Shown piece by piece: positions 38,311-64,000 of a stretch of DNA of 64,000 bases. Origin of the DNA: Monocercomonoides exilis PA203 (taxonomy: Eukaryota; Protista; Preaxostyla); the NCBI GenBank assembly GCA_001643675.2, contig LSRY02000001.1:1922001-1986000 (forward strand), in the 5' to 3' direction. Both the position numbers and the translations under genes were made by a program. Within the stretch, counting starts at the first letter, position 1. Every line of letters begins with the position of its first letter. Under the pieces are notes generated by a model that saw only the letters and a list, made by a program, of their open reading frames with translations, was not told the DNA's origin and ran no database searches.

Positions 38311-39340
38311 AAAATCTTAAATAAAATTAAATATAAAAGAAAAAAAAGTTTCAAACCATCGGTTATAATAATTATTATGTTAATTTTTACTAGTAAAAGT
38401 CATATTTGATTCCACAAAAATAGATATTCATTCTGAGTTTAAAGAAAATCCGAATGAATTCAAACATCTGCAATAATCAGAATTCTTGCTAATTCATAAA
38501 AAAGAATCGATGCACACTATGAAAATTTCATGAATAAGCAATTACAAAATAAACTGAAAAACGCTATCACATATTTATCATTAATTCTCAATTTTTAATT
38601 TTGATCAAAAAAGTTGATACATAATTTTTTGAAAAATATATATCTTCTCATAAAAAAGTTTGTTATGAGCCTACTAACATCACTGTGTGAGTTTTATATT
38701 TTCATTTGTATTATGGTAACGGAGTGTTTTTTTATTAACTTTCATGGGACTAATTTTTGATCCATAGCGACTTTTCAAAAAGAATTACCCATATATAAAA
38801 ACCTTCATATTCAAACCCTGATTTCTTTAAAATGAAGTTTAAATGAAATTTCTTTTTTGGTTTTATGAAATTCATAAAGTTTTATTGTTAAAATTAGTCA
38901 CAAAAACTCAAAAACCTAACAGAAAAAATGATCAAATGCATTGATATTTTTGGTGTTATTATGTTTCATCGAGATAATTATTAATGTTGAAAGATTATTC
39001 TTATTTTGACAAGGGATTTATCACAGACTTGTGTTGTTGAGTACGTTAAGCTCTGTTTCGATTCAGTTTATTGATTTTTTTAAGGAAATAATCACAACTT
39101 GTTAAATGATACGCTTTTGCTTAAATATGAACTTTTCAATGCGACTTTAGTTATTCCTGTGAAACAACGAAAGTGGGAACAGAAATAAAATCAATATTAG
39201 GGTTTCTCTTTTTGAAAAGACGCAAATGTTTCATATCCGTCTGAAAGAAAAACAGACTTTATAAAAACATTTTTTGCTCAATATCCATCAAATTTCTCCG
39301 CAATGCACTTAATTTCTTATAAAAAATGATAGAATATGTT

Positions 39341-39543
39341 GCTGATCCTTTTTGAAATCATTCTTTTGTTCGAGTTTTGATCAAAATTTAAATCTCCATG
39401 GGATTTTTGAAAAATTGAACAAAACTGATAATATACGTTGTTTAGGATGTTGTTAATGCAGAAACAAATTTTTTTCTCAATCCCATTGAAATAAAAAATT
39501 TGATCAAATCTCGAACGAAAGAATGATTTCAAAAAGGATCAGC
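39341..39543. mobile_element. Short MITE-like inverted repeat (family C)
   Basis: GCTGATCCTTTTTGAAATCATTCTTTTGTTCGAGTTTTGATCAAA pairs with TTTGATCAAATCTCGAACGAAAGAATGATTTCAAAAAGGATCAGC. No clear TSD. Confidence 0.6.
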
Positions 39544-40076
39544 CATGTCTAAATTTTTTTGAAAAGTTCCTTTTGTTTTATTTGAAATTAAAACAAAAGG
39601 AACTTAACAAAAAAAATAATGACATATTCTTCTGTTCAAATACAAAAAGCTTGAAGTATTATTTGCTAAAGAAAATCGAAATAGTGTTATGATTCTATCT
39701 TGACCTTTTTTCGAAATCAAGACCCTTTCCTTTTTTGCCTTTCCAACAGCTAGACACAAGCCTGTTAAAAAATAATAAATAACCAGAACTGTTTATTATA
39801 TAATAATCAAATTATTAAGATATTTTTTTTCAATATTTCATATTTTATAAAAAGATCAAGGATTATAATAATTATATGTTTTGATCATTGGCTTGCAGTT
39901 TTTTCATCGAATACTTATCCACAGAAATTTTAAGCTTTCATATCACAAAACATCGTTTTTTTTATATTATTTAGTTGTTTGAAACATTCTCAACTAGTTT
40001 TTTTAAATATTTTTTCTCATTTCACACATTATTCAAAAAAACATGATTTCATAAATAAATGAACTTTTGTTTTGTT

Positions 40077-40783
40077 CACCTAAAATTATTCAAGATAGAA
40101 AAAGTTTAATTCAAAATCGAAAAAGTTTTAAACAACATCAAAAAATTTTTATTAAACATCGAAAATGTTTTATTCAAAATCGAAAAAAAAAGATAATTTG
40201 TTCAGAATTTCAATTCAAGTCAAAACCAAAATATTTTCATTAACACAAATGTTGATAATAACATATGTTTATTTATTGGAAATGTTTTTCTTTCGTTTTT
40301 GACTGCTGTTTTCTATGATAAAGACTGATATTCATTGATCCTTTTCTCATTTTGAAAATTGAAAATGTTATATTTTATCAGCTTCCAATGCAATAAATGA
40401 AATTCAAAACATTTTGTTTTGAAAAAATGACATAAATTTCTGTCTTTTTGCACAAAAAACAAGATCATGAACTATCTTATCACCTTTATTTTTTGCTCAA
40501 ATTCCTTGATATCACCTGAATACATGTGAAGAGTTTTATTATAATTCAGTTTTATCCTATTTCCACGATTTCACACAATCAAACACCAAAAAAAAAACAT
40601 CAAAATTTTTTTTCCAATTTGAATTAACAAATTTCTCAGATCGTGCTTCGAAATAAAAGAAACTGACATGAGCATGATTTTTTAAAATTTTTTCAGATTT
40701 TTTGATGATATAGAATTTTCGATGTTGAATTGAACTTTTTCGATTTTGAATTCAAGTTTTTCGATGTTGAATAATTTTTGGTG
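40077..40783. mobile_element. Older family A-related MITE with short 21-bp arms and a different core
   Basis: CACCTAAAATTATTCAA ... TTGAATAATTTTTGGTG|TA with 3-5 degenerate TCGAAAAA units at each end. Confidence 0.7.
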
Positions 40784-44996: not shown

Positions 44997-46227
44997 TTAC
45001 CACATTTCTTCATCTTCATCATCTTCTTCCCCATCTTCATCTTCATCCAAATCATTGTAATTATCTTCATCGTTATATTCGCCTTCATTTCCTTCTCCTT
45101 CTCCTTCTTCTCCTTCTTCTCCTTCTCCTTCTCCTTCTTCTCCCTCAATTTTCCTTTCTTCTGATTCATTTGCCTCATAATCACTAACATTCTCACCATT
45201 CTCTTCTGAATCCGCTTCTTCTTCAGCCATTTCATCATCATCATCTTCTTCTTCTTTTCTTTCTTCTCCTTCTTCTCTTTCCTCCTCCTCTTCTTCATTT
45301 CCTTCCTCTTTCTCTTCTTCATTTCCTTCTTCTTTTCCTTCTCCTCCTTCTTCCTCCTCCTTCTCTTCATTATGCTCATCATCTTCTTCTTCTCTTTCGC
45401 TTTGCCCATCAAATTCATTATCATGTTCATCATTATCTTCTTCCTCCTCTTCCTCTTCCTTCTCCCTCTCCTCTTCTTTCTCTTCTTCTTTCTCTTCTTC
45501 TTCTCCTTCTTCTTTCTCTTCTCCTTCTTCTTTCTCTTCTTCTTCTTCTTTCTCTTCCTTTTCTTCTTCTTCCTTTTCTTCTTCTTCCATTCTCTTCTGA
45601 TACTCCAGAAACATTTCTCTGTCTTTCTTTGTTATCCTCTTGTTCCCATCAACATCGAAACATTCATTTTTCTTCTGCTCTTTCGAAATATCTGCCTTTT
45701 TCATCGGCTTTTCTTCATTTTCTTTCTCTCTTTCTCTTTCCCTTTCTCTCTCTTTTTCTTCTTCATTGTCTTCTTCTTCTTCCTCTTTTATTTTCTTCTC
45801 CTTTGATAGAATCTCCAATGTTGGTATAACAGAATCAAAATCAATCTTTTTTGATTTTGCTTTTTCTTTTGCTTTTTCTTCTTCCATTGCTTCTTTTTCT
45901 TCCTTCTCTTTCTCTTTCTCTTTCTCTTTTCCCTCTTCCTCATTCTTCTCCTTCTCTTCTTTCTCTTCTTTCTCTTCTTTCTCCTCCTCTTTCTTCTCTT
46001 CTTTCTCCTTCTTTATTCCTTTCTCTCTCTTCTCTTTCTTCCCTTCTTTCCTCTTCTCCTTCTCCTCTTCCTCTTCCTCCTTCTCTCTTGCCATTCTCTC
46101 CAACATTTGTCTGCTTGTTTCTTCTTCTTTCTTCTCAACCGCCGGCAATTCTGAACAGAAAACGGGCTGCCACTCAAGCTTCATCACAGCCACGGATATG
46201 TTGTCTCTCTCTATTTTATCAGAGGAA

Positions 46228-46259
<32 letters not shown>

Positions 46260-48911
46260 AGAAGAAGAGGTGTCTGAAAAATAATAATAATAATAATAAC
46301 AATAACAATAATAAAGAATAGAGAAATTAGACAAAACACATTAAATGAAAAATGAAATAATAAAAATGAAAATATAATTCTAATAAAAGAAAAAAAAAAA
46401 GAAAAGAAAAATATTCAAAAAATTTTTTCTTTCTTTCTTCTTTTTATAATATACAAGAAAAAGAAAAAATGAACATTCTTCATTCAACAACACACTTTCT
46501 GCACTTTTATTTGTTTTTCCTTTGTTTTTGCTGTCATATCGCTTCAGTGCTTCAGAAAGCAAACAAGAAGATATTTCCTGTGCAGACGGATAAACAAGAG
46601 GAAATGTCACTTTAACATCTTCTTCTTCTTCTTCTCTTTCTCCTTCTCTCTTTTCCTCTTTTGTAGAAGAAGAAGAAGAAGAAGAAGAAGAAGATTCACA
46701 ATTTTCTCCTTTCTTCTTCTCTTTCTCTTTCTCTTTCTCCTTCTCTTCTTTCTCTTTCTCCTCTTTCTCCTTCTGTTGTGCCAACATATTTGCCATTGCT
46801 GCTGCTGCTGATGCTCTCAATGGCTGTGGAACAGAAGATTGATCAACAATTCGCAAACCTCCTGATTTATTTCCATTTGCTCCATATTGTTGGCTTTGTG
46901 AAGAAGAAGAGGGAGAAGAAGAAGAAGAAGAAGAAGAAGAATTATTCCCTCCTCCTCCTCCTCCTTCCTTTTGTGACGAATGAAGAATTGCGATTTCTTC
47001 CTTTGTGAGAATGGCATCGATGTCTTTGTATTGATCTGGGTGTGCTTTAGCCTGTGTGACCAGCTCTTCAGTGAAGATGGTGATGCGAGGAGAAGGAGAA
47101 GAGAAAGATTTAGAGGAAGAAGAAGAGAGAGAAGAGGAAGAGGAAGAAGAAGAAGAAGAGGAAGAAGAAGAAGATTTTGGTGATTTAGAAGAAGATTTTA
47201 TTGAAGAAGAAGAAGAAGAAGAAGAACTAGAAAATTCTTTTTCTTTGCCATCTTTCTCGTTCATTGGATGCTTTTTGTGAGTGGCGAGGTGAGGTGAGGT
47301 TGATACGACACTCACATTTATCCGCTTTGAAATGAGCATTTGACATTCTTCGGGTGAAATCACGTCCCACAACTGAAGAAGGAAATAATTAAATTAAATT
47401 AAATTATTTAATTAATTTTGATTTTGGTTTTTGGATTTGTTGGGAAGGGGGGTTAGATAAGAATAAATAAACAGATAGAAATAGAAAAAAATAGGAAAAA
47501 AAAAATAAAGAAGAAGAAGAAGAAGAAGAAGAATAAAAAATGAAAAATAAATTAATAAAAAATAAATAAAAATAAACAAAATAAAAAATTAAAATAACAA
47601 TCAAAAAACTCATTCATTTAACCAATCCATACCCCATCAGTCGCCACCACCACCCACAGAGGAGGTGGAATCAATCTGTCTGTGCCTTCTTCATCCAGCT
47701 CATCTGCTTCCACATCGTCTTCCTCCTCTTCTCCTTCTCCTCCTTCTCCTCTTCTTCCCTTCACCTTCATTGTTATTCCCATCATCCCCTTCCTCACTTT
47801 TGCCTTTGTTTTCACCACCCCTGTCATTTCTTCCTCTCTTTTCCTTCTTCTTTCTTCTTCTTTCTTCTCTTTCTCTCTCTCTTTCCTCTCCTCTTTCCTC
47901 TTCTGGAAATCCCACAATGCTGCTTCGTGTTCTTTTTTTCTCTGAATTAGCAGTTTTTTCAGTGCTTTTCCAAAGCCAGTGAAGGGAGTCAGAGCAAGGC
48001 GACTAACAAAAGGGGTGCTGATTGTCTGTGGAGAAGAGAAATCGCCTAGGGAGCGGGTGATGTGGAGGCCTGGAGAAAGAGAAAGAGAAAGAGAAAGAGA
48101 AAGAGAAAGAGAAAGAGAAAGAAAGAAAGAAAAATAAAACAAAACAAAACAAAAAAAAAAAAAAATAACACATTCAAAAAAAAAGAGAGAAAGAAATGCA
48201 ATAATATAATACCGTTTATTCTGTTGGCCATGATAGATCCGTCGTCTTCGCCAACAATAGCACCGCTGTTGACACAACGTTGTTTTTCATCTGTGTTTGA
48301 TGAATGATGAAACTCACTCATTTCAAGTGGAGGGTATGTTGGATCAGAGGAACTGGAGGAAGAGGAGGAGGAGGAGAAGGAAGGGAAAGAGGGAAAGAAA
48401 ATGAAAATAAAAAAAAATTAAAAATTAAAGAAGAAGAAGAAGAAGAGGAGGAGGAGAGAAAGGAATAAAGAAAGGAATAAAGAAAGGAATAAAGAAAAGA
48501 AAAGAAAAGGGTAAAAGAAAAAGTAAAGAAAAAGTAAAGAAAAAGATAAAAGAAAATGAAAAATAAAATAAAATAAAATAAAAATAAACAAACAATAGAA
48601 AAGCTTCAGAATCTCCGACGTTTGCGAAGAGCAGTTCTTTTGATTCGATTGGAGTGACAATCACATCGCGAAAAGAAGAAAGGCAATCATTTGAAGAGGA
48701 AGAGGAGGAAGAGGAGGAAGAGGAGGAAGAGGAGGAAGAGGAAGAGGAAGAAGAAGAATTTTCGTTATTGCTATAATTGCTATTATTATTATTATTATTA
48801 GAATTTATTTGAGTTTGTGGTGTTTGTGATTGCGATTGTGATAAAGATTCAGATTTCTCTGCTAAAGTTGAAGGTTCATTGGATGAAGGAGAAAGAGGAG
48901 AAGAGGAGGAG

Positions 48912-48946
<35 letters not shown>

Positions 48947-50636
48947 GGAAGAAGAAGAATTAGCAGAAGAATTCTTCAAGGGCCTAATTAGAACAGGAAC
49001 GCCAGCATTATTTAGAGAGTAAAGAGAAGAAGAAGAAGAAGAAGAAGAAGATGATGATGTGGAGGTGTTGTGGATAGCAGCAATGCTTGCGGTTGTTCCG
49101 GCATTGAAAAACACATCACGTGAGGTTTCTTGCATTAGTTGCTCGATTTCCTGTGAAAATAAAAAATGAAAAAATATTAATGAAAAAAATTAAATAAATA
49201 AATAAAAAATTATCAAATAATTTTATTTGTTTAATTAGAACAAGTAAATAAATACATAAACAATTACATTGGTTCAAAAAAAAAAAGACATAGAAGGAAT
49301 ATGAATGAATTAGTGAAAGAAAGAAAAGAAAGAAAAGAAAGAAAAGGAAAAAAAAATAGGAAAAATAAAAAGAAAGAAAATATATAAAAAGAAAATATTA
49401 AAAAAAAAATAATCCATGTTTAAATATAATGTCACACCGTAAACATGTTCTGGAAAGCCGACACAGCAGCTTTCTTATTATTTCCATCTTCCTCCTCTTC
49501 CTCCTCTTTCTCTTCTTTCTTCTCTTTCTTCTCTTTCTTCTCTTTCTTCTCTTTCTTCTCTTCCTTCTCTTCCTTCTCAAACTGCTGCAAAAGCAATGGA
49601 ATGCAGTTATTTCTCGCTAATTGTGATGCTTTTTTCCCGCTTTTTTGGTCAGACGAATGGCCATCAAAGACACAAACAGCTGCTTCTATTGGCTGCATTC
49701 CTGTGGAGCAGATACCGATTGAGTCGTCCTGAAGAGAAAAAAAAAAAAAAAATTATTTTTTTTTTTGTTATAAGAAGAGGGGAGAGGAAGGAGAAGGGGA
49801 AGAAAGGGAAATAAAATTAAAAATAGATATTTAACGTTTTATTTTGAATATTATAATAAAAACATATTTCAATAAAGAAATTTGACAAAGTTTAACAAAA
49901 AGATAAAATGGCATAAAAAATTACAAAAATAGATCTTAACCTCCATATTTATTTTGTTCCTATCGCTTGCCACAGACACCGTAGGAACCAGAATAACTGA
50001 TCCATCCCAAAACAAACTGCCCTGCTCTTCATTCGCCTCCCCCTTTCGATTTTCGCTTCCTTTCGCTCTTTCTTTCATTTTGACACGTATGTCAACTCCT
50101 GCTTTCATCTCAGCCATCCGCCGCGATTCTCTATTGATAACAATCGAAAGCATTTCATATTCCTTTTTTATCATTTCAATCTCTTCTTTCATCATTGAAG
50201 CTTTTCCTTTTTCTTTCAACAACAAAGGTGGGTAAGCGCGGTCCAACTTGCTATCCAATTTGAACATTCCTTTTTCTTGCTTTGCTGTTAATATTTGCTT
50301 TTGGGGTGAACCTTTTGCATTTAGTGTTGAACCTTTGATATTCTTGGAAGAGCTTGTCACATTTTGAGGCGAACTTTTTGCTTTTTTTGTTTCAAGTTTT
50401 GCTTTTTCACTTATCGCTTGCTTTCCTTTTGGAGGTTCAGTATTTTCACGCCCAAAACAATAATAAGATAATCTCGAAATGTCACCGTAAATTCTGTCTT
50501 TTTGAGCTGAAAACAAAAAATGATTAAATTGCAAAATTATTTTTGCAAACGTGGCTTAGCTTGTTCTTCGAGCTGCAGAGAAATAAATGTCTTTCGAGAT
50601 TGGGGTGTAAGCTTGTCTGGTGTCTTTTTGATTGGA
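44997..50636 (-). CDS. PP2C/PPM-family protein phosphatase with long poly-Ser and Glu/Lys inserts; exons include 50506-49941, 49728-49438, 49150-48594, 48352-48213, 48069-47633, 47372-46475, 46273-44997
   Basis: After splicing, the PPM motifs appear in order: RNKINMEDD, VFDGH, GTTA, ANVGDS, H...EKQR, GLHITRSLGD, ATDGLWD, DNISV. 5' end unresolved. Confidence 0.88.
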
Positions 50637-51291
50637 CTGAATGAAGAAATTTATAATTGTGTGTTAAAATCTAGAATAAAGAAAAGAGTTGCATAATACC
50701 TTTTCTCGTACTATAAATCAATATAAAAGAATACGATAATAGTCAAAAAATGATCCAATCATTGAAATGAACATCGAAATTTTTTGAAATATTATTAATG
50801 CTTGTTATAAGTTTTCAAAGAAAAGATAAACATTTTTAGTCCTTGAGTCTTGAGTTCCGTTTAAAGAGGAATTAAGAGACTGGTTGCTACTCATCGAATT
50901 GCTTATATTATCAAATAGAAAGCAAATTATTAATGATCGCAACCCTTAACAGCTTGTGATGAAATTTAATTTAAAACATCTTTTAAAAATGACTCATAAA
51001 AAGTGAATAGAAAAGATTAAAAATGCTTTTGAGAAAGAGTAAGTGGGTGACATGAAAAGATAAAAGCAAGAGAAAGCTGTTAAGAAAAAAACTGGGATGT
51101 GAGAAATAAATGAACAATACTTTTATCCATTAGAGTATGAATCTAAAAGAATATAAACTCTTCACAAGAACAAATAAAAATTAAAATGCAAATGAAACAT
51201 AAAAAATGTACTGTTTTCGTTGTTCATTTTTATTTTTATTTTATTTTTATTAATTTTTTAATATTTTATTTTTTTAAAACTTACCAAAATA

Positions 51292-52564
51292 TTAGACCTT
51301 CATCTTCTCCAGATCCACAATATACTTTTCAGGAATATTTTCCTGTCTCAACTCAGCCAGTTTCTTTGCCTTCAATCGCTCTAATCTTTGTTTTCTCTCT
51401 GCTTCTGCACGGCGCAGTGTTTCTCCTTCTCTCAGCTCAGCGTCTCTTTTGTCACGTGCTTCTTGACGCCGGGCTTCGATTTGCTCCTGTTTATGTGGAA
51501 GAGAAAGAAGAGAAGAGAGAGAAGAGAAGGAAGAAGAGGAAAAGAGAAGGAAAAAAGAAAAAGGAAGAAAAAGGAAGAAAAAAGAGAAAGAAAGAAAGAG
51601 AAGAAGAAGAAGAAGAGAGAAAGAGGAATGGAAATAGAAAGAGAAGGAAGAAGAAGAACGATGGAAAGAAGGAAAGAGAAAGAAGGAAAATGAAAGAGAA
51701 GAAAGAGAAAGAGAGAAAGAGAGAAAGAGAGAAAGAGAGAAAGAGAGAAAGAGAGAAAGAGAGAAAGAGAAAGAGATAGAGATAGAGAGAGCAAGAGAAA
51801 GAGATGAATGGGAAGGAAAAGTGAAGAAAGAGAAAGAGAAAGGTTAAATAAATAAATAAATAAAGAGAATTTTGAATAAATAAGAATTATAAAATTGTTG
51901 TCTCTTTGCTAAAAAATACTTAACTTTCTCACAATTAGCATTTTTTTCTCAAAAATTTTTGAGAGAATAAAAAATTTCACTCAAAATTCATTTTTTCCCT
52001 CTTCCTCCCCCTCTCCCTCTCTTCTCCTCTTTTCCTCTTCCTCTCCTCCTCTCCTCCTCTCCTCCTCTCCTCCCCTTCTCCTCTTCTCCTTCTCCACACC
52101 TTCAATCCGCTCAGATGCTCCTGTGACTTAAACGCCCTTGTCCTGATCATCGTCCTCTCCTTCTCGCTCTCTGCTTTTTCGACCTCCAAATTCCGCTCAA
52201 ATTCTTCTCTTTCTCTTTTTTCTGCGTCTTCCAGCAGTATCTTCTTCGCCATCACCTGCAAATCGCGCGCTTCTTTCGTCTCTCGCTCCATTCGCGCCCG
52301 TTTCTCCGCTTCTTCCTGTAAAAAGAAAAAGAAAAAGAAAAAGAAAAAGAAAAAGAAAAAGAAAAAGAAAAAGAAAAAAAGAAAAAAGAAAAAATAAATA
52401 AATAAAAGAAAGAAAGAAAAAACAATATATTAACGTTGTTATGTAATAATAATAATTATTCTTCGAATCTAAAATATATATAGAAATAAATAAATATCTT
52501 CACAAATATCAACCCATCTTTCTCTTCTCTTTTTTATTCACCCCTTCTTCTTCTTCTCTCTCTC

Positions 52565-52606
<42 letters not shown>

Positions 52607-52813
52607 CCCTTCTCCCTCCTCCAACACACTTTCTGCTTCTTCCTCCATGCCCTTTCCTCAGCCTCAGTTGCCCTCTTCGCATTCAGCTGGTCTTTGATGG
52701 CCTGCTCGTCGATCATCTTCTCCTGCATCGCCCTCAACCTGGCTGTCTCTAACTCCCTTTCTTTCTTCTTCCTCAGCTGCTCGGCCTCGTATGCTGCTTC
52801 TCGCTCCTGAAAT

Positions 52814-52847
<34 letters not shown>

Positions 52848-53011
52848 AAGAGAAAGAGAGAGAGAAAAAGAGGAAGAGAAAGAGGAAGAGAAGAGAAATA
52901 AAAATATTAAAAAAAAAAAAAAAGAAAATTATAAAGAAAGATGAGACAAAAGAGATATAAAAGAGAGATAGATAAATAAAAATAAATAAAGAAAGAAAGG
53001 AAATATTAAAA

Positions 53012-53090
<79 letters not shown>

Positions 53091-54323
53091 TAAGAGAAAA
53101 TCACAATAATTCTATAATTATTTTTCTTTTTCTTCTTTTTCTTCTTTTTCTTCTTTTTCTTCTTTTTCTTCTTTTTCTTCTTTTTCTTCTTTTTCTTCTT
53201 TTTCTTCTTTTTCTTTTCTATATTTATAAACAAACCGCTTTTGCTTTTTGATATTCAACAACTTTCAAATCTTCCAAGTGATCCAACTCAATTTGCCGTT
53301 TTTTCGTCTCCTGGAATCGGATGTTCTCCTTCACAATCTCTTCTTGAAGCGCTCTAATAACACACATCACACGAAGTATTGTTGAAATGCAATATATATA
53401 TATATATAAATATATTCATTTCATTAAATCATATAATTCCCAGTTAAAACAATATAAAAATGAATTCCTATTAAAAAAAAATAATTACAATGAAATTAAT
53501 AACCTGCTCTTTGCTGCTTTTATTTTTTGCTGCTCTATCTCTTCTTGTCTTTGCCGCTCCATATCCCTAAGTCTGGCTTCTCCTTCCCTTTCAATTTCAT
53601 CTCTTTGCCTTTCTTTCTCCATTTTTCTTTCCTGGATTTGTTGTACAACAACTTTTGCTCCTTCTCTTCTTTCAATAGCCTTTGCTCTCTCTTCTGCTTC
53701 TCTTTTTTCCAATTCTCGAACTCGCTCTTCTTCCATCAAGCGCGCCCAAGCCATCTCCTCTTCTCTTTCTTTTTGTTTTGCCATGCGTTTTTCTTCCCGT
53801 TGTTTATCTCTAACTCCAACAGTACGAGCATATTGCATCAAACTATCCATATATTTTGCTTCGTCAAGTTCTTCATCTTTCTGCTCTTCAGCAGCTGCAA
53901 CAAGTTGATCATGCTCAATTTTGTGCAGAGCATCAATGTCTGAAAGCTCAGTTTTGCTTTGTCGTTCCTTTTCCCTATCAAGTATTAATTGCTTTCTTCG
54001 TTGGGACGCGAGCATCTGTTGCTGTGTTGCTTGAAGTTTAAATTGTCTAGTTTTTTCCTTTTCTTCAGCATCTAACCCGGCAAGACCCTAATAAATAATA
54101 TGAAAAAGAAGAACACTATTAAGAAAATGAAGATAATTTGTGCAACCTTCATTCTCGCTAATTCTGCTCTTGTAAGAACAACAACCTTTCCATCATTTTT
54201 TATACCTCCCGAAAAACGAGTGCCCGTTCGTGAAGTCGACTGAAGGAGGAAGAGAAAGCAATTTTGAAATTTAAAAAAATATGCACGAAAACTCATATCC
54301 CGTATTACAATAAAACAAACCAT
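51292..54323 (-). CDS. CFAP45: Cilia- and flagella-associated protein 45 (TPH domain); exons 54323-54321, 54239-54147, 54087-53504, 53353-53236, 52806-52630, 52315-52100, 51486-51292 (~461 aa)
   Basis: Coiled coil with EELDEAKYMDSLMQYARTVGVRDKQREEK, LRAMQEKMIDEQAIKDQLNAKRATEAEERAWR and C-terminal IPEKYIVDL. Introns are phase-consistent. Confidence 0.8.
53015..53215. repeat. Intronic (ATA)n and (CTTTTTCTT)n microsatellites
   Basis: Read directly from the sequence. Confidence 0.9.
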
Positions 54324-54847
54324 CAAGAATTAAAAACGTTTAACTCTTCAGAAATATGGGTCAATAAATCAATTATTATTTGACAACGTGAGTTTAATGA
54401 AAAAATTTGGAAAAGAAGACAAACTAATATTACACAAGTGTGAAGTGATTATTATATAAACGTGTTCATTAAATCCGATGTTCGCTTTTTGAATAGATTG
54501 AAAAAAAAGTTAAAAAAAATTCAAAAAAAATATTTCAACGTACAAAGAAAAATCTTGTATCGAAACTTATTTTATTTTTGCATTTCAAATTTATAAAAAT
54601 TATTAACATTTTTATCAAAATGAAAATGTCGAATAGGAATGCATTTTTTTCGAGTTTGCATAATGAATGGTGAATATGCCTAAAAAAAGATAAAACAGAA
54701 ATTACATGGGGAAAAAAGATTCATATGTCTTTTCGAAGAGTTGTAAATTTCCTAATGAAAAGATATTTATTTAAATGAAATAAAATATATTGCATTTCAT
54801 AATTTTCCTCATTCATAAAGCATCAAGTCAGAATATACGCAAAAGTG

Positions 54848-56289
54848 TCACATAAACCTTCTCTTGAAAAGATGAAATACTTCACGAAAACTTGTGACTG
54901 CATCTTCATATCCTTCTTCTTCCATCTTTTCAAACATTTTTCTTTTCAACAGTTTTCTTTTCACTTCGTCCATTTCATCATCCTCTTCTTCTTTCCTTTT
55001 GTCTTCCTTTTTTTCTTCCAATCTTACTGAAATATTAATAAAGAACTCAAAACAAGAAAATTTTACCACGTTATTCAATGATTGATTCTGGATCACCTCC
55101 AAAACAGCATCAACAGCCCCTCCTTTCAGCAAGCAATTAACTTCCACAGATCTGCTTCTAACTGCTCTTTTAAATAAAAAGATACATTGATTGCTGATTT
55201 CTCTGCGATTATCCTTTGCTAATTGAAACACCTGCACAACGCTTTCGATCAGTCCGGAACATTCATCATTCCACAACTTGCACGAATCAAAGAAAGTGTC
55301 CAATGTTAAGAACCATTTCAACAAAACAAGCTCTTCTTTCGTTTCTTTTTCTTTTTTCTCATATTGAACTGTCCAATCCATAAATTTTGAAAGCTCTACC
55401 AATTCTCTTTTAACTTCCCTCGCAAAATGCAGCTCATTCACAATAACAACTTCTAATTCTTTTCCACTTTCCAATCTGTTGATCAAAAACTGCCAAGCAG
55501 ACTGAAATCCAAGTCGTGTTAGGTTGCAATGTTCCTGATGATGTTTGATGATCTCTAAAATTTCATTCAAATACAACCCTTGTTCCATTTCCTTATAAGA
55601 AATAACAAAAGTTTCAATAAATGGTCGGAAAACAATTCAAGAAATCAATAAACAAAACCTTATACTGCCCAATGTTGCTCAACGCAAGCAAAGCCATTTC
55701 CACATCCTCTTCAGCTTCCTCATTTTCCTCTTTGTTCGACACAAATCTCAGAAGACAAGGAACACAGATTGATAACAATTGGGGTGAAAAATATATGCAA
55801 AGAAAAAGATAGCATTCACAAAGATCAATCAGAAGCTTTTCATTTATTTTTTCTTTTTTCTGTTCTTCAACAATCATCTTCTCAAATCTTTCGTTCAAAG
55901 AAGATTCTGCAAAGATCCAAATATGCATAAATTTCAGCACAACGCAATATCCAACATGTTTCAGCATCAAGATTGTATTTCCCATTGAAAGTTTCACATC
56001 TTCAATCATAATTTTTATTCTATCAAACAGTTCTCTTGCGAAAACATAATAAAATTCTCCTTTGTCCATTTCCTCTATCAATTCATTCAATTTAAGGATT
56101 TTCTGTTTCTGTTCTTCTTCATTGTAATCTTCAAGTTCGTCAAACAATTCTTTAAAAATTTTGAAAAGATCATTATTTGCAAGAATTCATATGCAACTGC
56201 TATTGCACACCATTGAACTTTTTTGTGTTGTCTGTCTCCTGTATTTTTTTACAAAATATGACATCCAGAAAACAACATTCAAAAGCCAT
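54848..56289 (-). CDS. Paralog 4 of the helical-protein family; exons 56289-56211, 56149-55659, 55591-54848 (~437 aa)
   Basis: Same motifs and intron positions as paralog 1; introns 56150-56210 and 55592-55658 keep the frame. Confidence 0.8.
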
Positions 56290-57388
56290 TAAAATTGAAT
56301 TTGAATATGATTGAATTGAAGAAATCAGAGCAAAACATGAACTCAAAGCAACATGAGAACATCAGCTTTCACACCATATATCTTTGCACTTGCATTTTAA
56401 AGAAAATATTACAAGAAAAAAAAAGTTTAATCTTTTCAAGTTTGTCATAATGGATGTTGAGATCATCACATTTGAATGATCAAAAATATTCCTTTTTGAA
56501 GTGAGAATCGGTAAGACAATATTTTCGGTATTATGGAACTTAATGGTATTCACTTTAACAGATTTGAAACATAAAGCAATGTTTTTATTTGTCATTTCAT
56601 TGTTTCATGTTCATATGTCATTGTGCGGAAACGTTTTCTCATGAAGTTGAAATCATTAGAAAAATAAATATTATCAAATTGTAAATGGGATTAAACCAAA
56701 AAATAATTATTGCCAAAGATGCATAAAACAGATATGTAATGGTGCTTCAGATGAAAAAGCGTTTTAAATGATTATGAGGGTTATTGAGGTGATGGAGATT
56801 GTGAAAAGTTCATCAGTATATTTTATAAATATGATATTAGAATTACATCAAAATTGATATTGTTTATTTTTCATATTTTTTTTTGTTAAAAACAGATTTC
56901 TTCAAACATTTATCACATTGTTCGTTCTTTCTACGTCACTCACAATTAGAATTCTTTCATTCAGAGAATATTAATCAAACAATATATTATCTTTTGAATG
57001 AGTATCAAAAATGGACAATTGATGAGATTTTTTGCTTCGACAAAGCATCGAGATTATTCATTCAATATATATTCCTTTTCAAAAGAAAAATATTCATAAT
57101 TATTTTTCTTTCAATTTTCCAATATTATTTCATTTGAAACCCATAAAAATATGAAGTGGGAAAACACTGCATAAAGACATTAGAAGGGAAGAAAAAAAGA
57201 AGAATGTTTAAATTAATTTTTTCCATAAAAATATTAATGAACATGTAATTAATAAAGATACATACAAATACATGCAAACGAATATACAATTATTATCTTC
57301 CTTTCTCATTTGTGATTGGTGCGATCTATCATTTGTATCATACAGATAAAAAACGAATCTGTTTCTTTTCACAAATCCATCGAACAAT

Positions 57389-57666
57389 TCATCCTCTATT
57401 TGCATTTTCTCCCATTTTTGATGCTGTTGTTACTGTTGCTGTTGAAGTCGTTGCAGAAGTTGAAGAAGTGATGGTTGTATTTGTTGTTGTTATTAATTGA
57501 ATGATTGTCCCTTCCTTTTCACCATCTGACTCACTTTCTGAGCTCTCAGCATATGCAATTGCATCTGAGGCTGTCATCACAATTGCATTCTCTGGAAAGT
57601 GCGAAAACAACTCCTTCTTTATCTCAAACTGCCACATCCTCCTGCTCGCATTCTCTTCCCAGCAGC
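57389..57666 (-). pseudogene. Orphan C-terminal fragment of a receptor pseudokinase
   Basis: CWEENASRRMWQFEIKKELFSHFPENAIVMTASDAI aligns without gaps to CLSAQPEDRLSLAGLKREFIQRFPAGAAILTMSDAI, then has its own Thr-rich tail and TGA. Confidence 0.8.
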
Positions 57667-58117
57667 TTCCAACAAATAAAAAGCTCATTTGTGAAAAACA
57701 AAAAAAGAATAACATTTGTGAAAAAATGGACAAACAACACAAATCGAAGTCTCTCATAATCCAAACAGAATGTGAAATCACAATACATGTTCCAAAAAGA
57801 AAAGATTGAACTGAAAGTTCGAAATAGAGATAAAATAAAAAATGAGTTTGTGTTCAGGATGTGAACTGAAACAACATGAGAAATACATACATAGCGAATA
57901 AATACAAATACATAAACACAACATATGACAAGCAGACCAATTCTGCTTTTGAAGCAATTAATGTTTGAAATTGATCCAAACATAACAATTCATGGAAACA
58001 AAAAGAAGAAGACAAACAAGTCGAATTGCTGAATAGAGTCAAAATAAAAAAACACCATTATTCACATATTTGTGAAATAAAAGCATATCCAAAGCATGTC
58101 AATCATCAACTCCACAT

Positions 58118-61100
58118 TCACTTTTCAGTCAGCAAAGTTCCTGTGATATCTGAAGAATTCGCACTTGTGCTTTGCTCCCCATCTTCTGTTCTCTCCTCCA
58201 GATCAATCGCATCTGACATCGTCAGAATTGCTGCTCCTGCAGGAAACCGCTGGATGAACTCTCGCTTCAGCCCTGCCAAGCTCAGTCTGTCTTCTGGCTG
58301 AGCAGACAGGCAAGCTCGGATGATTTCAAAGAAATTCGATTCCTTCACAGCTGACATGTTTGGTCGTTCGTGATTCACTATCTTCTGCCCTGCCACCTCT
58401 GCTTCATACTCCCCAAACGGAATCTCCAGTGTCAGACATTCCCACAGCATCATCCCAATCGAGAATGCCACAGATTCCTTTGTCGCTCCCATCTTCTTGT
58501 TCATCTTCAGCTCTGGTGCTTTCCACCTCAGACATTCTTTTCTTATATCGTCGTCGTCTTCAAAGGCAGATGAAGGAGGTGGAGAGTCTTCGCTATCATC
58601 ACTGGCAGATGTCACAACAGTCGACGAAGAGATCGATGATGAGTCAGAATCATCATCAGAAGAGAAGTCAGAGTGCATCACAATGCAGATGACCATATGT
58701 TCTGAGAACAGCACAATGTGCGGACTCAGACTGCCCAGCGATTGCAGTGGATTCTCCATCTCGTCAAACGAGTGAAGTGCAAGATTTGCCACCCAGAACA
58801 GGATCTGCGCAGCTGTTTGCTCCCTCTCCTGAAGAGTGCCTATCGCCATCTCTTTTGTCTTGTTCTTTCCATGCAACAGCATGAACAGTGAATCTCTCAA
58901 ATCCACAATAAGCTTCTCATGTGGAGATGAACAGGCCATTGCATCCACAAGATTCGACATCGATGAAGTGGTTGGACACAGATCCTCCCCACGAACAAAT
59001 GTCGAATCAGAATCTGTTGTCGAAGTGGTGGAAGTGGATGGTGATGGAGTTCTCTTTCTCACCTCTTCCTCATCTTCAACCTTCTCCAGTGCCCATTCAG
59101 GGATCTTGTCTGAGTCTCTCCCAAAAATATATTCAGTCGATCCACTCTCACTCAGCAAATGCTCAGATGATTCAGAATGTTCCAAGCTTTTCTCACACAT
59201 TCTCTTCTTGATCCTCTCATCGTTCTTTTTTTCTGCTTCTCTTTCAGCTCTCCTCCACTGCTCCTCAGGTGATGGCTCCATCGTCACCATCTCAATCAGT
59301 TTCGGATCCTTCCTCACTGTGTCTTCCACAATCACTTCCAATTCTTCTGTTCGTCTTTTTTGCTTTCTCCACCGAACAGCAAACAAAATAAATCCAAACA
59401 GTACAATCAAAAACAAAACAACAAATATGATAGCAATTATCACAGCCCATGATGATTTTCCTTCTTTCCTTCCATCAACAAGTTTTTCATTTCCACTTGA
59501 CTGACTTTCACTCATGTTCTTAACAATAAACGGCTCTGTTGATGAAGGAGATTCTGCATTCCCAAACAGAATGCACACACTCACTCCTGTCTCTTCTCTC
59601 ACTTTCTCCAATTCCGAAGATGAAATAAATGTGTGAATCTCATTCTCTGATACAAACCCTTCTTCTTCAATTTCCTTTCTCACAATTTCTTCTTCATCCC
59701 CATTTTTCATGCTCATCTTCACTGACAAATCACATGGCAGAAGCAGCTTTCCCAAAATTATTAGATCCAAATTCCCATTCAATTGAGTTGAATTCTTCAC
59801 CTCTTCTAAAATGGGGATGAAAAATGATGATCCTCTTTCTGATGCAATCCCTTTCAACTTGCATCCTTCGTCCAATATCCACAATGAAGAATTGTCCTTC
59901 CATCCATCTCCCCCTTTCACACTCACAACATTCAATTCTCCACTCCCTTCACAAATCACATTCCTTCGAGTTGATGGATATCCTTCAATCTCGGGGTTGT
60001 TGTTCTCAAACTTGCTGTTTTCAATCTTCATACCCCCTCCACTCACCCACAGCCCTCCTCCCTTGCTCTTCATAATGATTGTTTCCCTCATCTCCACTTT
60101 GCTTTTCTCAATATCAACCAATGACCCATTCCATTTGCACAATCCTTCTTTTATCTTGTTTCCTTCATTGATAATTTCATCTTCTTTTTTTCCATCAAAT
60201 ACACATATCTCAATCCTCACATCCTTTGACTGCCTGATCTGCATCATGATTCCCTTGTCAACTGAATTCACACATTTTCCAAACGAGCAGTTCAGCACAC
60301 TCACCTCTTGTTCAGCATCATCCATCCCAATCGCACACCCCTCCAACAGCACAGTCATATTTTCAATGACCATCTCTTTCATCGCCACTTTCGCTTTCCC
60401 TCCAACACTCACAATATCTCCCTCACATTTGATGTTCAAAATGCTTGTTTCATCAATTGTAACATTCGATTCTTCATGGAATGAAAGAATTGATCTTGTT
60501 GAATGAATATCTCTGAATGTTGTTTCCGATATCTTTAGCTCTCCACTTTCCACGCTCACAATTGAACTGTTCAACTGCAACTCAACTGCGGTTGAAGAGG
60601 AGAAGAATTCACATTTCTGTATCTCCATTGAACCATTCTTCACTTTCATGATGTGGCTGTGAGTTGACTCAAAGGAATATTCAAACTCGAATGAGCACCT
60701 CTCCACTGAACATTCATTTATAAACTCCATGATGTAATCCTTCTCAAATGATTTCTCAATCTTGGAGTTCAACCTCACAATTGCTTGTGTCTTTTTCAAT
60801 GAATTCACAACCAGATCTCCAATCACACACTCCTTCGTCACAAACCCTTCCCCATCAATCAGAATCGCATTCATTACACCTTGCTCAACGTGGTCAACCC
60901 CACAGTTGATACTGAGACATGGATTGCTTTGAGATCCACACCTTCTGCCATCAGTTCCTGTTGCGTTCACAAACACTTGAAGCCCATAAAAATAGGTGAT
61001 TAGCGGAATCAGATCAACATCTCCCTCACTCTCAACATCCCTCCCACAGATGGAGTTGTTTGAGTTCAATGACTCCTGCTTATAGTTCAGGGCAAACAGC

Positions 61101-64000
61101 GTTTCGTTGATCTGTTGAGCAATCGAGTGGCATCTGACAAATATGTCTTTCCCTTCTGATGCCTCATTCATATAGAACAAAACGTTCACAATCTTGAAAT
61201 TCAGAGATGGAATCTGACTTTCATTTCCATAATTCGCATTCGGGTCAGATCCATCAATAAACAGCCCTCCTCCACACCCTGTTTCACTCGAACACTTGCA
61301 TATCGAAAACGAGCTGCCATTCACTTTCAACACTGATTCTCCTCTCTTCAACACCACTTTCATTCCCCCTCCTTCTCTGCTCAAACCACTCTTGCAACTT
61401 GACATCGAACACTCATCAATCACACACTCCATTCCATGCTCATATGATCCCACTTCAATAACATTTGCTTCATTCCCTTCGTTTGTGATATTGGCAAATG
61501 AACACCCAACAACCCTCAAAACTGGTCTGTTGCCATTTGAACCAGTATTCTCATCTCCGTTCATTTGATTCTCGTCTATCATCGAAATCAGGCTCCTTTC
61601 TATCACACCAGCAAATGAAATGTTCACATTCTGAACAGTCACCTCACCTGAACTTGGCCTGAACGCAATCAACCCTTTCAACTCTGAGATTAAACTCAAC
61701 GAACTCCTCTCAATCACAACACTCCCTCCATTCACTCTTATCATACAATATCCAGCTGTCTCTGTCAGCCCGGTCAATGAACCAAATGAACAATCAGAAA
61801 CAGTCAATAAGATGTTTGTTCCGGAGGATTCAATCAACACTTCATGATGAGTTGTGATGGCTGGCTTGGTGAATGACATATTCACAATTGACAAACTCAC
61901 ATTCGAGGATATCATTGAACCATCATCCAAATCATTCTCGTCTTCATCACTGATCGTCATCCCTGTCCCTTTCTTTGTCCCTTCAATCACCACTTTTGGT
62001 AACTCTACAACCGATGATGAAGAAAATGAAAATGATATGGAATGACTCAGCAACCCTGACCCCACAATGGCAATATGTGTTTCCCCTTCTCCAAATGTTG
62101 GATATCGAAGTGATATCAAGTGGTCAATCGATGAACATGGTGCTTCCGAATACCCACACCCACTGAAGTCTCCTCCTTTCTCTCTCGAAACAAATCCATT
62201 CCCACTCCAATTATCCCACAAATACACAACCAGTGGAATCACATATCCCTCCTCTCCTGTCGTCTTCCTTTCCCATCCACACAGTTCATCCAACGATCTC
62301 AACTCCTCAGAACTCATCTCCCATTTGAGGTGATCCTCATTTACAATCTCACTCAGATCCCATCCCGAAATAAACACATTCTTCCCTTTCCAGGCATCGC
62401 ATCCCTCAAATGACATTCCTTCCATCACAAATGTTACCATCTCGTCTGGCAGCTTAACAAACATCCCTCCTCCCATTCCTCTTCCTCCATCCTCCACATC
62501 CTCTGTTGGCACTTCACATCCTGAATATTTCACATTTTTCATTTCCAAACTCCCTCCCTTCCCCACTGATATCTTCATCCCTCCTCCTTTCATAACACTC
62601 CCTCCTGAACACACTGATGACAAATTGCATTCTTCAATATTCACAATCCCATTCACTCCCATCTCCACATTCAAGCATCCTCCTCCATTCCCACCTGTCA
62701 CTTCCACTCCACACATTCGGCTGTTATTCATCTTCAATTTCACTCCATTTGTTATTGCGATTGGCGATTTCCCATGCATCTTCAGTGTCACTCCCCCTTC
62801 CATCACAAATCCATGAACAACCAACCCTCCTCCCTCAATACAAATCACATTGTATCCAATCATTTCATCATTTCCAAACGAGACTGAACAGCTAGTAATT
62901 GTGATGATTGCTGATGAGGAGTGGATAAATCCATTTCTCTTCCCATTCATCTCTTCATTCAGCATTAGTGACAAATATCTCATCTCAAATGATTTTGTGC
63001 ACTCAATAAGGTTATTTTGAGCTGTCGATCCTTTATCTTTTACAATCACCCTCATCCCTTCTTCTTTCCCTGAAACACTCACTTCAAATGACGCCACTTT
63101 CATCTCATTCTTTATCCATGATCCCGAAACAACTTCGATTTCATTCACGTTGCTGCTCGCTCTCTTCTCAACACAATAGTCAATCGTCAAACACCCAAAC
63201 TCCTCAAACCCACAATGACTGAGATCCAACGCCCTCTCTCCACTACCATCAACTCTCAACTTTGTCCCAATTGAACACAAATACACAAACAGCGGAATCA
63301 CTTCCCCTTCTTTCCCATCCTCACTCCCACACAACTTCAGAATATCTGATGGAATTGCATCTGACTCAAAAAACTCAAATGAGCTTGCATTCACATTCAA
63401 CTCCAACAACACTCCTCTTTCACATTGAACAAACAAATCCTTCCCATATTGAGCTTTGTTATTTGCTCCAAACAAACCCTCTCTTCCAGGTTCCATTTTC
63501 ATTGAACCATCCCTGCTCTCCATCACAATCATCATCCCTCCCCCTCTCCCTTCACTTCCCTCTGAACCTTTCGCATCACATCCATCAATCACACAACTCC
63601 CATTCACAACAACACTTCCTTCCCCTTTCACTCTAACGCACATCCCTCCTCCTCTTCCACAAAGGCAACTGCACCCCTTCACAACACACGACTCAATCAC
63701 AATTATCCCATTCTTTCCCTCACCTCTTTCTGCTCCAACCACTCCACTCACCCATCCCCCATCTCCATTTCTCTTCTCAATGTTGTTCACATCACATCCA
63801 CAAAACACAACTGATTCCACTCCTTCACCAAACTCAATCAGTGAATGTTCTCCAAATGTCAAGGTCTCTGTGATAACCAATCCCTCCACTTTCACTTTTC
63901 CCCCAATTACATTCACAAAACAATATCCAATGGAATTCTCTGATGAACAAATAACAGAACAGTCTGTGAGTGTGAGGAGTGTGGAGTTGGATGAAATCAG
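58118..64000 (-). CDS. Second giant receptor-like pseudokinase (5' part outside the window)
   Basis: The frame is open to the window edge. Same GGG(M/L) and CG...PC modules, TM WAVIIAIIFVVLFLIVLFGFILFAV-RWRK, and a cytoplasmic region highly similar to that of the first gene. Confidence 0.88.
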   Translation of the reverse strand: MISSNSTLLTLTDCSVICSSENSIGYCFVNVIGGKVKVEGLVITETLTFGEHSLIEFGEGVESVVFCGCDVNNIEKRNGDGGWVSGVVGAERGEGKNGIIVIESCVVKGCSCLCGRGGGMCVRVKGEGSVVVNGSCVIDGCDAKGSEGSEGRGGGMMIVMESRDGSMKMEPGREGLFGANNKAQYGKDLFVQCERGVLLELNVNASSFEFFESDAIPSDILKLCGSEDGKEGEVIPLFVYLCSIGTKLRVDGSGERALDLSHCGFEEFGCLTIDYCVEKRASSNVNEIEVVSGSWIKNEMKVASFEVSVSGKEEGMRVIVKDKGSTAQNNLIECTKSFEMRYLSLMLNEEMNGKRNGFIHSSSAIITITSCSVSFGNDEMIGYNVICIEGGGLVVHGFVMEGGVTLKMHGKSPIAITNGVKLKMNNSRMCGVEVTGGNGGGCLNVEMGVNGIVNIEECNLSSVCSGGSVMKGGGMKISVGKGGSLEMKNVKYSGCEVPTEDVEDGGRGMGGGMFVKLPDEMVTFVMEGMSFEGCDAWKGKNVFISGWDLSEIVNEDHLKWEMSSEELRSLDELCGWERKTTGEEGYVIPLVVYLWDNWSGNGFVSREKGGDFSGCGYSEAPCSSIDHLISLRYPTFGEGETHIAIVGSGLLSHSISFSFSSSSVVELPKVVIEGTKKGTGMTISDEDENDLDDGSMISSNVSLSIVNMSFTKPAITTHHEVLIESSGTNILLTVSDCSFGSLTGLTETAGYCMIRVNGGSVVIERSSLSLISELKGLIAFRPSSGEVTVQNVNISFAGVIERSLISMIDENQMNGDENTGSNGNRPVLRVVGCSFANITNEGNEANVIEVGSYEHGMECVIDECSMSSCKSGLSREGGGMKVVLKRGESVLKVNGSSFSICKCSSETGCGGGLFIDGSDPNANYGNESQIPSLNFKIVNVLFYMNEASEGKDIFVRCHSIAQQINETLFALNYKQESLNSNNSICGRDVESEGDVDLIPLITYFYGLQVFVNATGTDGRRCGSQSNPCLSINCGVDHVEQGVMNAILIDGEGFVTKECVIGDLVVNSLKKTQAIVRLNSKIEKSFEKDYIMEFINECSVERCSFEFEYSFESTHSHIMKVKNGSMEIQKCEFFSSSTAVELQLNSSIVSVESGELKISETTFRDIHSTRSILSFHEESNVTIDETSILNIKCEGDIVSVGGKAKVAMKEMVIENMTVLLEGCAIGMDDAEQEVSVLNCSFGKCVNSVDKGIMMQIRQSKDVRIEICVFDGKKEDEIINEGNKIKEGLCKWNGSLVDIEKSKVEMRETIIMKSKGGGLWVSGGGMKIENSKFENNNPEIEGYPSTRRNVICEGSGELNVVSVKGGDGWKDNSSLWILDEGCKLKGIASERGSSFFIPILEEVKNSTQLNGNLDLIILGKLLLPCDLSVKMSMKNGDEEEIVRKEIEEEGFVSENEIHTFISSSELEKVREETGVSVCILFGNAESPSSTEPFIVKNMSESQSSGNEKLVDGRKEGKSSWAVIIAIIFVVLFLIVLFGFILFAVRWRKQKRRTEELEVIVEDTVRKDPKLIEMVTMEPSPEEQWRRAEREAEKKNDERIKKRMCEKSLEHSESSEHLLSESGSTEYIFGRDSDKIPEWALEKVEDEEEVRKRTPSPSTSTTSTTDSDSTFVRGEDLCPTTSSMSNLVDAMACSSPHEKLIVDLRDSLFMLLHGKNKTKEMAIGTLQEREQTAAQILFWVANLALHSFDEMENPLQSLGSLSPHIVLFSEHMVICIVMHSDFSSDDDSDSSSISSSTVVTSASDDSEDSPPPSSAFEDDDDIRKECLRWKAPELKMNKKMGATKESVAFSIGMMLWECLTLEIPFGEYEAEVAGQKIVNHERPNMSAVKESNFFEIIRACLSAQPEDRLSLAGLKREFIQRFPAGAAILTMSDAIDLEERTEDGEQSTSANSSDITGTLLTEK

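Follow-up and report, generated by a model that had tools for sequence, protein, structure and literature searches.

We analysed a window of 64,000 nucleotides on contig LSRY02000001.1 (here C1, positions 1922001-1986000) of the protist Monocercomonoides exilis PA203, whose genome assembly (GCA_001643675.2) comprises 82.3 Mb in 101 contigs. The window holds two giant intronless open reading frames (ORFs), gene A and gene B, which are its two receptor genes. Our subject is the 3' end of gene B, where a tail and a 3' untranslated region (UTR) of the type found in gene A, together called the cassette, are followed by the stranded remnant of a different tail, called the orphan. The orphan is of a type found on contigs C34 and C20 (C34 type). 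Two further genes on C1 that carry full copies of the cassette are called gene C and gene D. Positions without a contig prefix are those of the window, in which the two genes and the 3' end of gene B are laid out as follows.

11674-19194, plus strand: ORF of gene A (2506 amino acids).
18913-19645, plus strand: tail and 3' UTR of gene A, of the donor type and intact, with AAATAAA at 19622-19628.
58118-63916, minus strand: ORF of gene B as given in the ORF list, continuing past the window end.
58400-64000, minus strand: body of gene B, with the ectodomain, the transmembrane segment and the N-terminal part of the kinase-like cytoplasmic domain; the gene extends to about C1:1989300.
58400-58418, minus strand: island of 19 bp in gene B that is not of the donor type, reading FGEYEAE versus FDEYEGE in A-type genes.
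58378-58399, minus strand: putative 5' crossover zone, the conserved EVAGQKI block, identical in donor and recipient types in an alignment of 20 genes.
58118-58377, minus strand: putatively copied coding sequence of the A-type tail (VNHERPN...TLLTEK), with its stop codon at 58120-58118; it falls in the A-type tail clade.
57676-58117, minus strand: putatively copied 3' UTR of the type of A, C and D, shortened relative to these three and 93.8-95.4% identical to them.
57665-57675, minus strand: 3' junction, an 11-bp microhomology (TTGTTGGAAGC) shared by the donor-type UTR and the recipient-type tail codons (V)VGS.
57389-57664, minus strand: orphan tail of the C34 type with its stop codon, located behind the new stop and untranslated as part of gene B.
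57077-57388, minus strand: the orphan's own 3' flank, also of the C34 type, 76-81% identical to the flanks of genes E34a and E34b, with AAATAA at 57130 and 57105.

Judged by their sequences, genes A and B belong to the M. exilis family of giant receptor or tyrosine-kinase-like proteins ('PTK', TKL). The extreme C-termini of both proteins matched Pfam PF07714 (E=1e-8 for A and E=9e-8 for B), over profile positions ~160-257 only, which represent the C-lobe. A search with the gene B protein returned 295 proteins at E<=1e-20, and all of those listed were annotated M. exilis proteins; its ectodomain was 87% identical to that of D and 90% identical to that of protein P0003. Genome-wide, we found at least 940 tail candidates, in ORFs mostly of 2500-4100 amino acids, and the genes of the family lie tens of kb apart, without tight tandem arrangement. 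Published work calls the protein tyrosine kinase or TKL family the largest of the M. exilis genome (PMC6759080, PMC8767320); these genome papers only count the family and note its overlap with unclassified repeats.

The stop-to-stop ORF of gene B reaches C1:1987719, a second ORF lies upstream, and the annotated protein is P0002, with 2978 amino acids. Compared with D and P0003, gene B has a 1-bp insertion at C1:1987714, about 1.7 kb past the window end (locus L047), and the resulting frameshift is spanned in the public annotation P0002 by an intron of 172 nt that removes ~57 codons. Because of this frameshift, gene B may be a decaying gene or pseudogene.

The cassette of gene B (58399-57667, minus strand) matched the end of gene A (18913-19645, plus strand) over 733 bp in both genes, with 94.7% identity. 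It comprises 93 codons plus stop (58399-58118) and 451 bp of 3' flank (58117-57667). Hence, the equal-length and nearly identical match noticed in an earlier reading of the letters alone (the original prediction) was borne out. A genome-wide search yielded four full copies of the cassette, all on contig C1: those of B and A and the two listed below.

C1:1886494-1887230: copy in gene C, 95.4% identical to B.
C1:2093151-2093888: copy in gene D, 94.7% identical to B.

At least seven further genes have only the coding 297 bp of the cassette, with ~94% identity, and the tail encoded by the cassette of B was 94-96% identical at the amino-acid level to that of nine other genes on C1.

Genes A and C are segmental duplicates, ~90% identical along 17 kb, and the A-type subfamily has at least 14 genes on C1, with ectodomains that are 91-92% identical. 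Genes B and D are collinear across at least 13.4 kb with ~88% identity. Their ectodomain belongs to the large subfamily of contigs C21 and C26 (85-87% nucleotide identity), and a closer paralog of the B ectodomain (93%), probably MONOS_13775, lies on C1 at ~1.86 Mb. Since an ectodomain of the C21/C26 subfamily is joined to an A-type tail, B and D are best described as chimeras of a foreign ectodomain with an A-type tail and an A/C-type UTR.

A contiguous copy of the cassette elsewhere in the genome, as expected of the donor of a templated insertion, was present in three full versions on the same contig, with 94.7-95.4% identity. When the four copies were compared, B grouped with C at 11 sites, with A at 8 sites and with D at 4 sites, while 13 sites were private to B. 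Because the four copies are mosaics of one another, none of the extant genes is the exact donor. Moreover, D was 100% identical to B across the final 46 bp of the cassette. Gene A is not the best candidate for the donor, as C matched B better overall and D matched it better at the end. The original prediction had allowed for another paralog as the donor.

Sliding-window identity between A and B was 50-65% in the ectodomain and 70-90% after the membrane, and collapsed in a Ser-rich low-complexity stretch. It amounted to 95-97% at 58550-58470, to 85-88% at 58464-58400 and to 90-100% from ~58400 to 57690, with an abrupt loss past 57667. The predicted step in identity just upstream of the cassette is thus real, although its edge is not clean, a point to which we return below. 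At 58418-58400, B has six states that neither D nor any of the eight A-type genes shares; its reading FGEYEAE is a common state across the family. With the adjoining EVAGQKI block, the homology between tail types comes to an end. In blastn, B, D and every A-type gene stop matching C34-type genes at a single point, directly behind the AGQKI codons, and protein identity across subfamilies is ~90% upstream of this edge versus 30-40% downstream. Because B is of the non-donor type at 58418-58400 and of the A type from 58399 on, its crossover would lie within the conserved 22-bp block 58378-58399. Gene D switches to A-type states farther upstream, between 58463 and 58436 in B coordinates, and its 3' end lies 70 bp farther downstream. 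The tract ends of B and D therefore differ, which implies no simple inheritance of one tract.

At the other end, the cassette match stops sharply at ...GTTGGAAGC. Past ...TTGTTGGAAGC, the flanks of A, C and D run on together, with ~70 bp common to all three and a much longer stretch common to A and C, whereas B alone among the four copies switches to a different sequence. C34-type genes encode (V)VGSCW as ...GTTGTTGGAAGCTGCTGG..., so that the 11 bp of the junction occur in both parents. We used a junction probe of 81 bp, of which bases 1-46 matched D with 100% identity and C and A with 93%, while bases 36-80 matched eight C34/C20 genes with 91%; the two matches overlap by 11 bp. The joined form occurs once in the assembly. 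In a simulation of random junctions between the two actual sequences, a microhomology of at least 11 bp was obtained in a fraction of 5.5e-5. This simulation replaced a count of k-mers shared by donor and recipient, which was dominated by T-runs.

The cassette is followed by an open frame of 93 codons (57670-57392, stop at 57391-57389), which can be aligned gap-free with the C-terminal part of the kinase-like tail of the family. In homologous coordinates, this orphan starts 27-28 codons after the cassette start, and ~20 codons past the point where the tail types diverge. The original prediction had described an open kinase C-terminus that resumes at the end of the match, aligned without gaps and displaced by ~29 codons, in good agreement with these values. 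About 20 codons of the old tail are absent, such that ~58 bp were exchanged for ~700 bp, and 91 codons of the old tail, the old stop and ~300 bp of the old 3' flank still lie behind the new stop.

The 367 bp past the junction were 77-80% identical at the nucleotide level to eight genes on contigs C34 and C20, with a weaker match on C58. Nucleotide and protein-level searches for C34-type sequence elsewhere on contig C1 found none. Protein identity of the orphan to the tails on C34, C20 and C58 was 61-72%. In the tail tree, the orphan was placed on a long branch inside the C34-type clade, with a support of 100/100, and the tail of the cassette in the A-type clade. The 3' flank of the orphan persists for ~270-310 bp, with AAATAA at +259 (E34a has AAATAAA at +250), past which the sequence resembles none of the regions around D, C and E34a. 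A match that made the downstream flank of D seem C34-like was rejected, as it represents a dispersed palindromic repeat that is also found at window positions 39328-39546. This repeat of ~220 bp (also at ~40128-40775) matches in both orientations and is present downstream of D and of C34 genes.

We compared synonymous (dS) and nonsynonymous (dN) distances over 56 well-aligned codons. The orphan differed from the C34 genes by a dS of 0.14 and a dN of 0.116, versus a dS of 0.115 and a dN of 0.047 among the C34 genes themselves. Hence, synonymous distances were about equal, whereas the nonsynonymous distance was 2.5 times higher. Within 168 bp, the orphan has 10 private changes. Nine of these fall in nonsynonymous codons; among the nine are G-to-W and L-to-Q, which both alter a conserved motif. 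Because the private changes are almost all nonsynonymous, the orphan appears to drift as non-coding DNA, and the fact that its frame is open is no indication of function. The messenger RNA (mRNA) of gene B probably extends across the orphan and relies on the old signal near 57105-57130; a 3' UTR of ~1 kb that contains the dead tail is thus predicted.

The structure of cassette, sharp junction and displaced tail is thus confirmed at the sequence level, and the microhomology and the affinities of both pieces can be read directly from the alignments. The best explanation, to which we assign a probability of about 0.68, is a one-sided homologous invasion that copied tail and UTR, followed by microhomology-mediated recapture. 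In this scenario, a break or stalled fork would have occurred in the earlier, C34-type tail of gene B, and the upstream end would have paired with a paralog having an A-type tail via the EVAGQKI block (58378-58400). The ~700 nt that this paralog would have supplied are present in B as 86 tail codons, the stop codon and ~450 nt of 3' UTR. Because the two tail types are too diverged to re-anneal, the new strand would have been recaptured out of register past EVAGQKI. The sequence places the join at the 11-nt match between the donor UTR and the (V)VGS codons of what would be B's own tail, of which the rest would have stayed in place, untranslated behind the new stop. A single event would account for the 5' switch at the edge of homology, the microhomology, the small deletion and the collinear remnant. 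We infer the order of events and the repair pathway, which may have been synthesis-dependent strand annealing (SDSA) with one-sided invasion or replication template switching.

Several observations argue for this one-sided invasion. The cassette is present with ~95% identity in four genes, of which only B is truncated at the junction. Furthermore, one junction of B lies in homology and the other in a microhomology, as expected of one-sided invasion or SDSA with capture. A start of the orphan ~20 codons past the 5' switch is what repair of a local break predicts, and would be a coincidence of 1-5% under rival explanations. The placement of orphan and cassette tail in their two clades, the nonsynonymous private changes of the orphan, as befits untranslated DNA, the frequency of tail swapping in the family and the lack of a family gene downstream of D also speak for it. 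A canonical tract of ectopic gene conversion would have homology at both ends and no duplication of the target; at B, the 3' end lies in an 11-bp microhomology amid unrelated sequence and the replaced tail is retained. The core of the mechanism that had originally been proposed, with a paralog's tail and UTR copied by one-sided invasion and the old tail pushed downstream, is therefore still the best-supported reading. The 11-bp microhomology adds new evidence to it, and gene A is not the best candidate for the donor.

Other observations weigh against the one-sided invasion. The 5' identity step is not clean, as the patch at 58550-58470 is again 95-97% identical to gene A. The ectodomain of B is nearest to the C21/C26 subfamily (85-87% nucleotide identity), versus only 49-50% amino-acid identity to the C34 genes. 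We therefore rejected the idea that the orphan and the B ectodomain belong to the same subfamily, and a C34-type tail in the ancestor of B requires an earlier swap; the closest ectodomain relatives of B do not typically carry this tail type either. This mismatch weighs less, since tails and ectodomains are uncoupled in this family in any case (see below). In addition, every subfamily is 72-90% identical to the upstream kinase-like region of B, so that no link between the orphan and B can be drawn from this region. An analysis of diagnostic sites and identity in the N-terminal part of the cytoplasmic domain gave no subfamily assignment for B, as this region is a family-wide blur. Around the insertion, positions are collinear with ~20 codons missing, but with the upstream region homogenised across the family a common lineage is not demonstrable. 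Finally, the private divergence of the orphan is 6% (10/168), without a sign of constraint, whereas that of the cassette is 1.8% (13/733). Two readings are left: later conversions refreshed the cassette, or the C34 piece had died before the cassette arrived. Refreshment can explain the gap because the cassette is visibly a mosaic of C-like, D-like and A-like stretches.

In a rather unlikely alternative, a separate C34-type gene, or a fragment of one, would have lain at the locus, with the orphan as what is left of its 3' end, and the microhomology would mark the endpoint of a deletion or duplication. Such a remnant could have arisen in two ways, either by a microhomology-mediated deletion that fused it to the A-type UTR of B, or by a segmental duplication that created B and ended there. 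In favour of this alternative, the homology between B and D stops exactly at the junction, the type of the orphan tail differs from the ectodomain subfamily of B, and the orphan appears unconstrained over its whole private branch, which is longer than that of the cassette. However, a breakpoint in a gene of ~8.5 kb must then fall by chance ~60 bp past the switch to the donor type, and contig C1 has no other C34-type sequence. The wide spacing of family genes also speaks against a neighbouring tandem gene, and the island at 58400-58418, which is absent in D, represents a 5' boundary specific to B. A tandem family gene downstream of D would have favoured a deletion; this candidate was rejected, since the ORF located there has no similarity to the family.

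Repair with multiple templates, akin to microhomology-mediated break-induced replication (MMBIR), is an improbable alternative. The C34 piece would then never have been the tail of B, and would have been copied from another chromosome during the same or a later event. This would agree with a C34-like stretch that is short (~600 bp) and bounded, with a join at a microhomology and with the small synonymous distance between the orphan and the nearest C34 genes (dS 0.05-0.08). Yet, a primer of 11 nt has dozens of chance targets in 82 Mb, and why it should land in a paralog's homologous tail region, oriented alike and 20 codons away from the entry point, is left unexplained. Moreover, no second microhomology junction was identified at the distal end, where homology fades near +250 to +380, just as it does among the C34 genes themselves. 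Both the separate gene and the multiple templates have to treat the proximity of the two boundaries, at 60 bp, as a coincidence, and the D locus lends support to neither.

The one-sided invasion might also have used an RNA-derived donor, i.e. the complementary DNA (cDNA) or mRNA of an A/C-type gene instead of genomic DNA. M. exilis transcripts are cleaved 20-30 nt after AAATAAA-like motifs (PMC8767320), the cassette of B ends at a point that lies 17-24 nt past an AAATAAA in genes A and C, and the genes of the family are intronless ORFs. At the position of this motif, a consensus for poly(A) signals in the species, B and D however have AAATGAG (57684-57690) in place of the AAATAAA of A and C (19622-19628). 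There is no A-run at the junction, where ...GGAAGC runs straight into tail codons, and the last 46 bp of the B cassette are those of D, whose genomic copy continues 70 bp past the junction point. For these three reasons a cDNA donor is very unlikely, and the microhomology sufficiently explains the position of the junction. It is also quite improbable that modules of tail plus 3' UTR are generally exchanged as transcript-end units by RNA-templated or cDNA-templated repair, even though the stranded C34-type module, like the copied tract, ends near its own AAUAAA-like signal. If such an exchange did occur, the locus would be a stack of successive transcript-derived tail replacements, and the exchange could explain the presence of intronless giant genes in an intron-rich genome. 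An artefact, with a chimeric join in the Oxford Nanopore (ONT) assembly, would be consistent with a junction that occurs only once in the assembly. We consider it extremely unlikely: misassemblies arise within long repeats rather than at matches of 11 bp, the sequence of the orphan is unique and has private substitutions of its own, and polishing of the assembly included Nanopolish and ten Pilon rounds (PMC8767320).

To place gene B in its family, we compared the ectodomains and tails of 60 annotated relatives (1770 pairs), using the annotated proteins. The 340 residues before AGQKI were ~82% identical regardless of ectodomain identity (Spearman 0.07), while tails were ~40% identical. Per-position identity dropped from ~0.9 to ~0.3 within six residues past AGQKI. 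Ten of the 17 pairs with at least 90% ectodomain identity had tails that were less than 50% identical, whereas some pairs with only 43-44% ectodomain identity had tails that were 92-93% identical. Since as many as 12 tail types were found among 15 proteins with ectodomains at least 78% identical to that of B, tail exchange at the AGQKI edge is common. The same kind of exchange as at B, usually resolved cleanly, accounts for the uncoupling of tails from ectodomains across the family.

In B, the tract is bounded on one side by the edge of a conserved coding block and on the other by a chance 11-mer, and the exchange boundary is simply where homology stops. A 9-mer repeated in the UTR, TTCACAAAT, was considered as a signal and rejected, because it was not enriched. 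Tail mixing in this family therefore has the appearance of ordinary ectopic recombination where a conserved coding block ends, rather than of a dedicated system. The original prediction of a recombinational system that mixes ectodomains with interchangeable tails was right about the mixing, while nothing points to machinery devoted to it. Among ~40 family loci for which 1.5 kb or more of the downstream sequence was covered, a second tail fragment behind the gene was found at one, namely B. The retained orphan tail is thus an exception in the family.

Tails and UTRs of other family members showed further variation. Six A-type genes on C1 (L006-L011, e.g. C1:2631647-2631943) have coding tails that are ~94% identical to those of A and C, and lose all similarity to A and C ~15 bp past the stop codon; within this one subfamily, the 3' UTR was therefore swapped independently of the tail. 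Locus L040 (C58:1975306-1978521) has an in-frame hybrid tail, of which the first half is of the ...LAGLKREFIQRFP type and the second half of the C34 type (ANAAVVTASDAIAYAESSES...). The change of type occurs at ...RFP|ANA..., and L040 would represent a crossover within the tail that was resolved cleanly and in register. Tail-like matches were also found in open frames of only 95-207 amino acids (C51:430149-430295, C75:52735-52881, C21:647909-648076, C12:1523922-1524155 and C36:1561277-1561543), which are possibly further orphan tails or broken genes. Many inverted pairs of family genes were found throughout the genome, oriented tail-to-tail a few kb apart and with tails of identical scores, e.g. 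C36:538892(+)/542505(-), C22:983111/988031, C10:368142/376110, C49:545713/558321 and C58:2061295/2075070. In several of these pairs, one partner is a short open frame only.

Between genes A and B, the ORF at 29484-31343 (plus strand) encodes an inosine-uridine-preferring nucleoside hydrolase domain (PF01156, E=2e-26). Pfam gave no match for the ORFs neighbouring B (44997-56147). A dispersed element of ~1 kb at 55096-56158 includes two ORFs on the minus strand (54848-55588 and 55614-56147), both without a Pfam match. It recurs upstream of gene C (70% identity) and of E34a (74-79%), in differing orientations.

The B locus represents a rare tail exchange with its traces intact, in which the donor-type sequence, both junctions and the replaced tail are still readable. 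It would illustrate how tails and 3' UTRs are transferred between otherwise unrelated receptors, with homologous entry at EVAGQKI and exit wherever re-annealing is possible. It reveals neither a new mechanism nor a dedicated diversification system. In the segmental gene conversion of trypanosome variant surface glycoprotein (VSG) genes, variable surface-protein genes exchange modules, and conserved blocks serve as recombination boundaries. The exchange of surface-protein modules at conserved blocks in the M. exilis family resembles this system, and the likeness is one of resemblance only. In contrast to VSG genes, the module exchanged here is the cytoplasmic tail with its UTR and not the exposed part of the protein; an expression site, a silent archive or a dedicated repeat signal were not seen here, although no dedicated test for them was made.

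Ectopic (interlocus) gene conversion in surface-protein families shares with the B locus the non-reciprocal copying between paralogs and the mosaic products, with tails and 3' flanks common to genes with unrelated ectodomains. It differs from B in that both ends of a canonical tract are homologous and no duplicate remains, whereas B has a non-homologous 3' end and a surviving replaced segment. Templated insertions produced by MMBIR or by fork stalling and template switching (FoSTeS) are similar in the 11-bp microhomology at the joint and in the ~700 bp templated from elsewhere on the chromosome. Unlike these, the first switch in B would have used real homology, within a coding block that is conserved, and only one template can be recognised.

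The closest likeness is with the SDSA model of double-strand break repair by one-sided invasion with illegitimate joining of the second end (Puchta 1998, as cited in PMC9299229; reviewed in PMC4888836), an outcome known from plants and other systems. In contrast to these cases, the B locus reflects an event that happened naturally between dispersed paralogs of a protist multigene family and became fixed in the germline; it is inferred from sequence, and the break itself was unobserved. In both, one junction lies in homology and the other at a microhomology, the donor copy extends beyond the homology, and the result is a net insertion in which part of the target is duplicated or retained.

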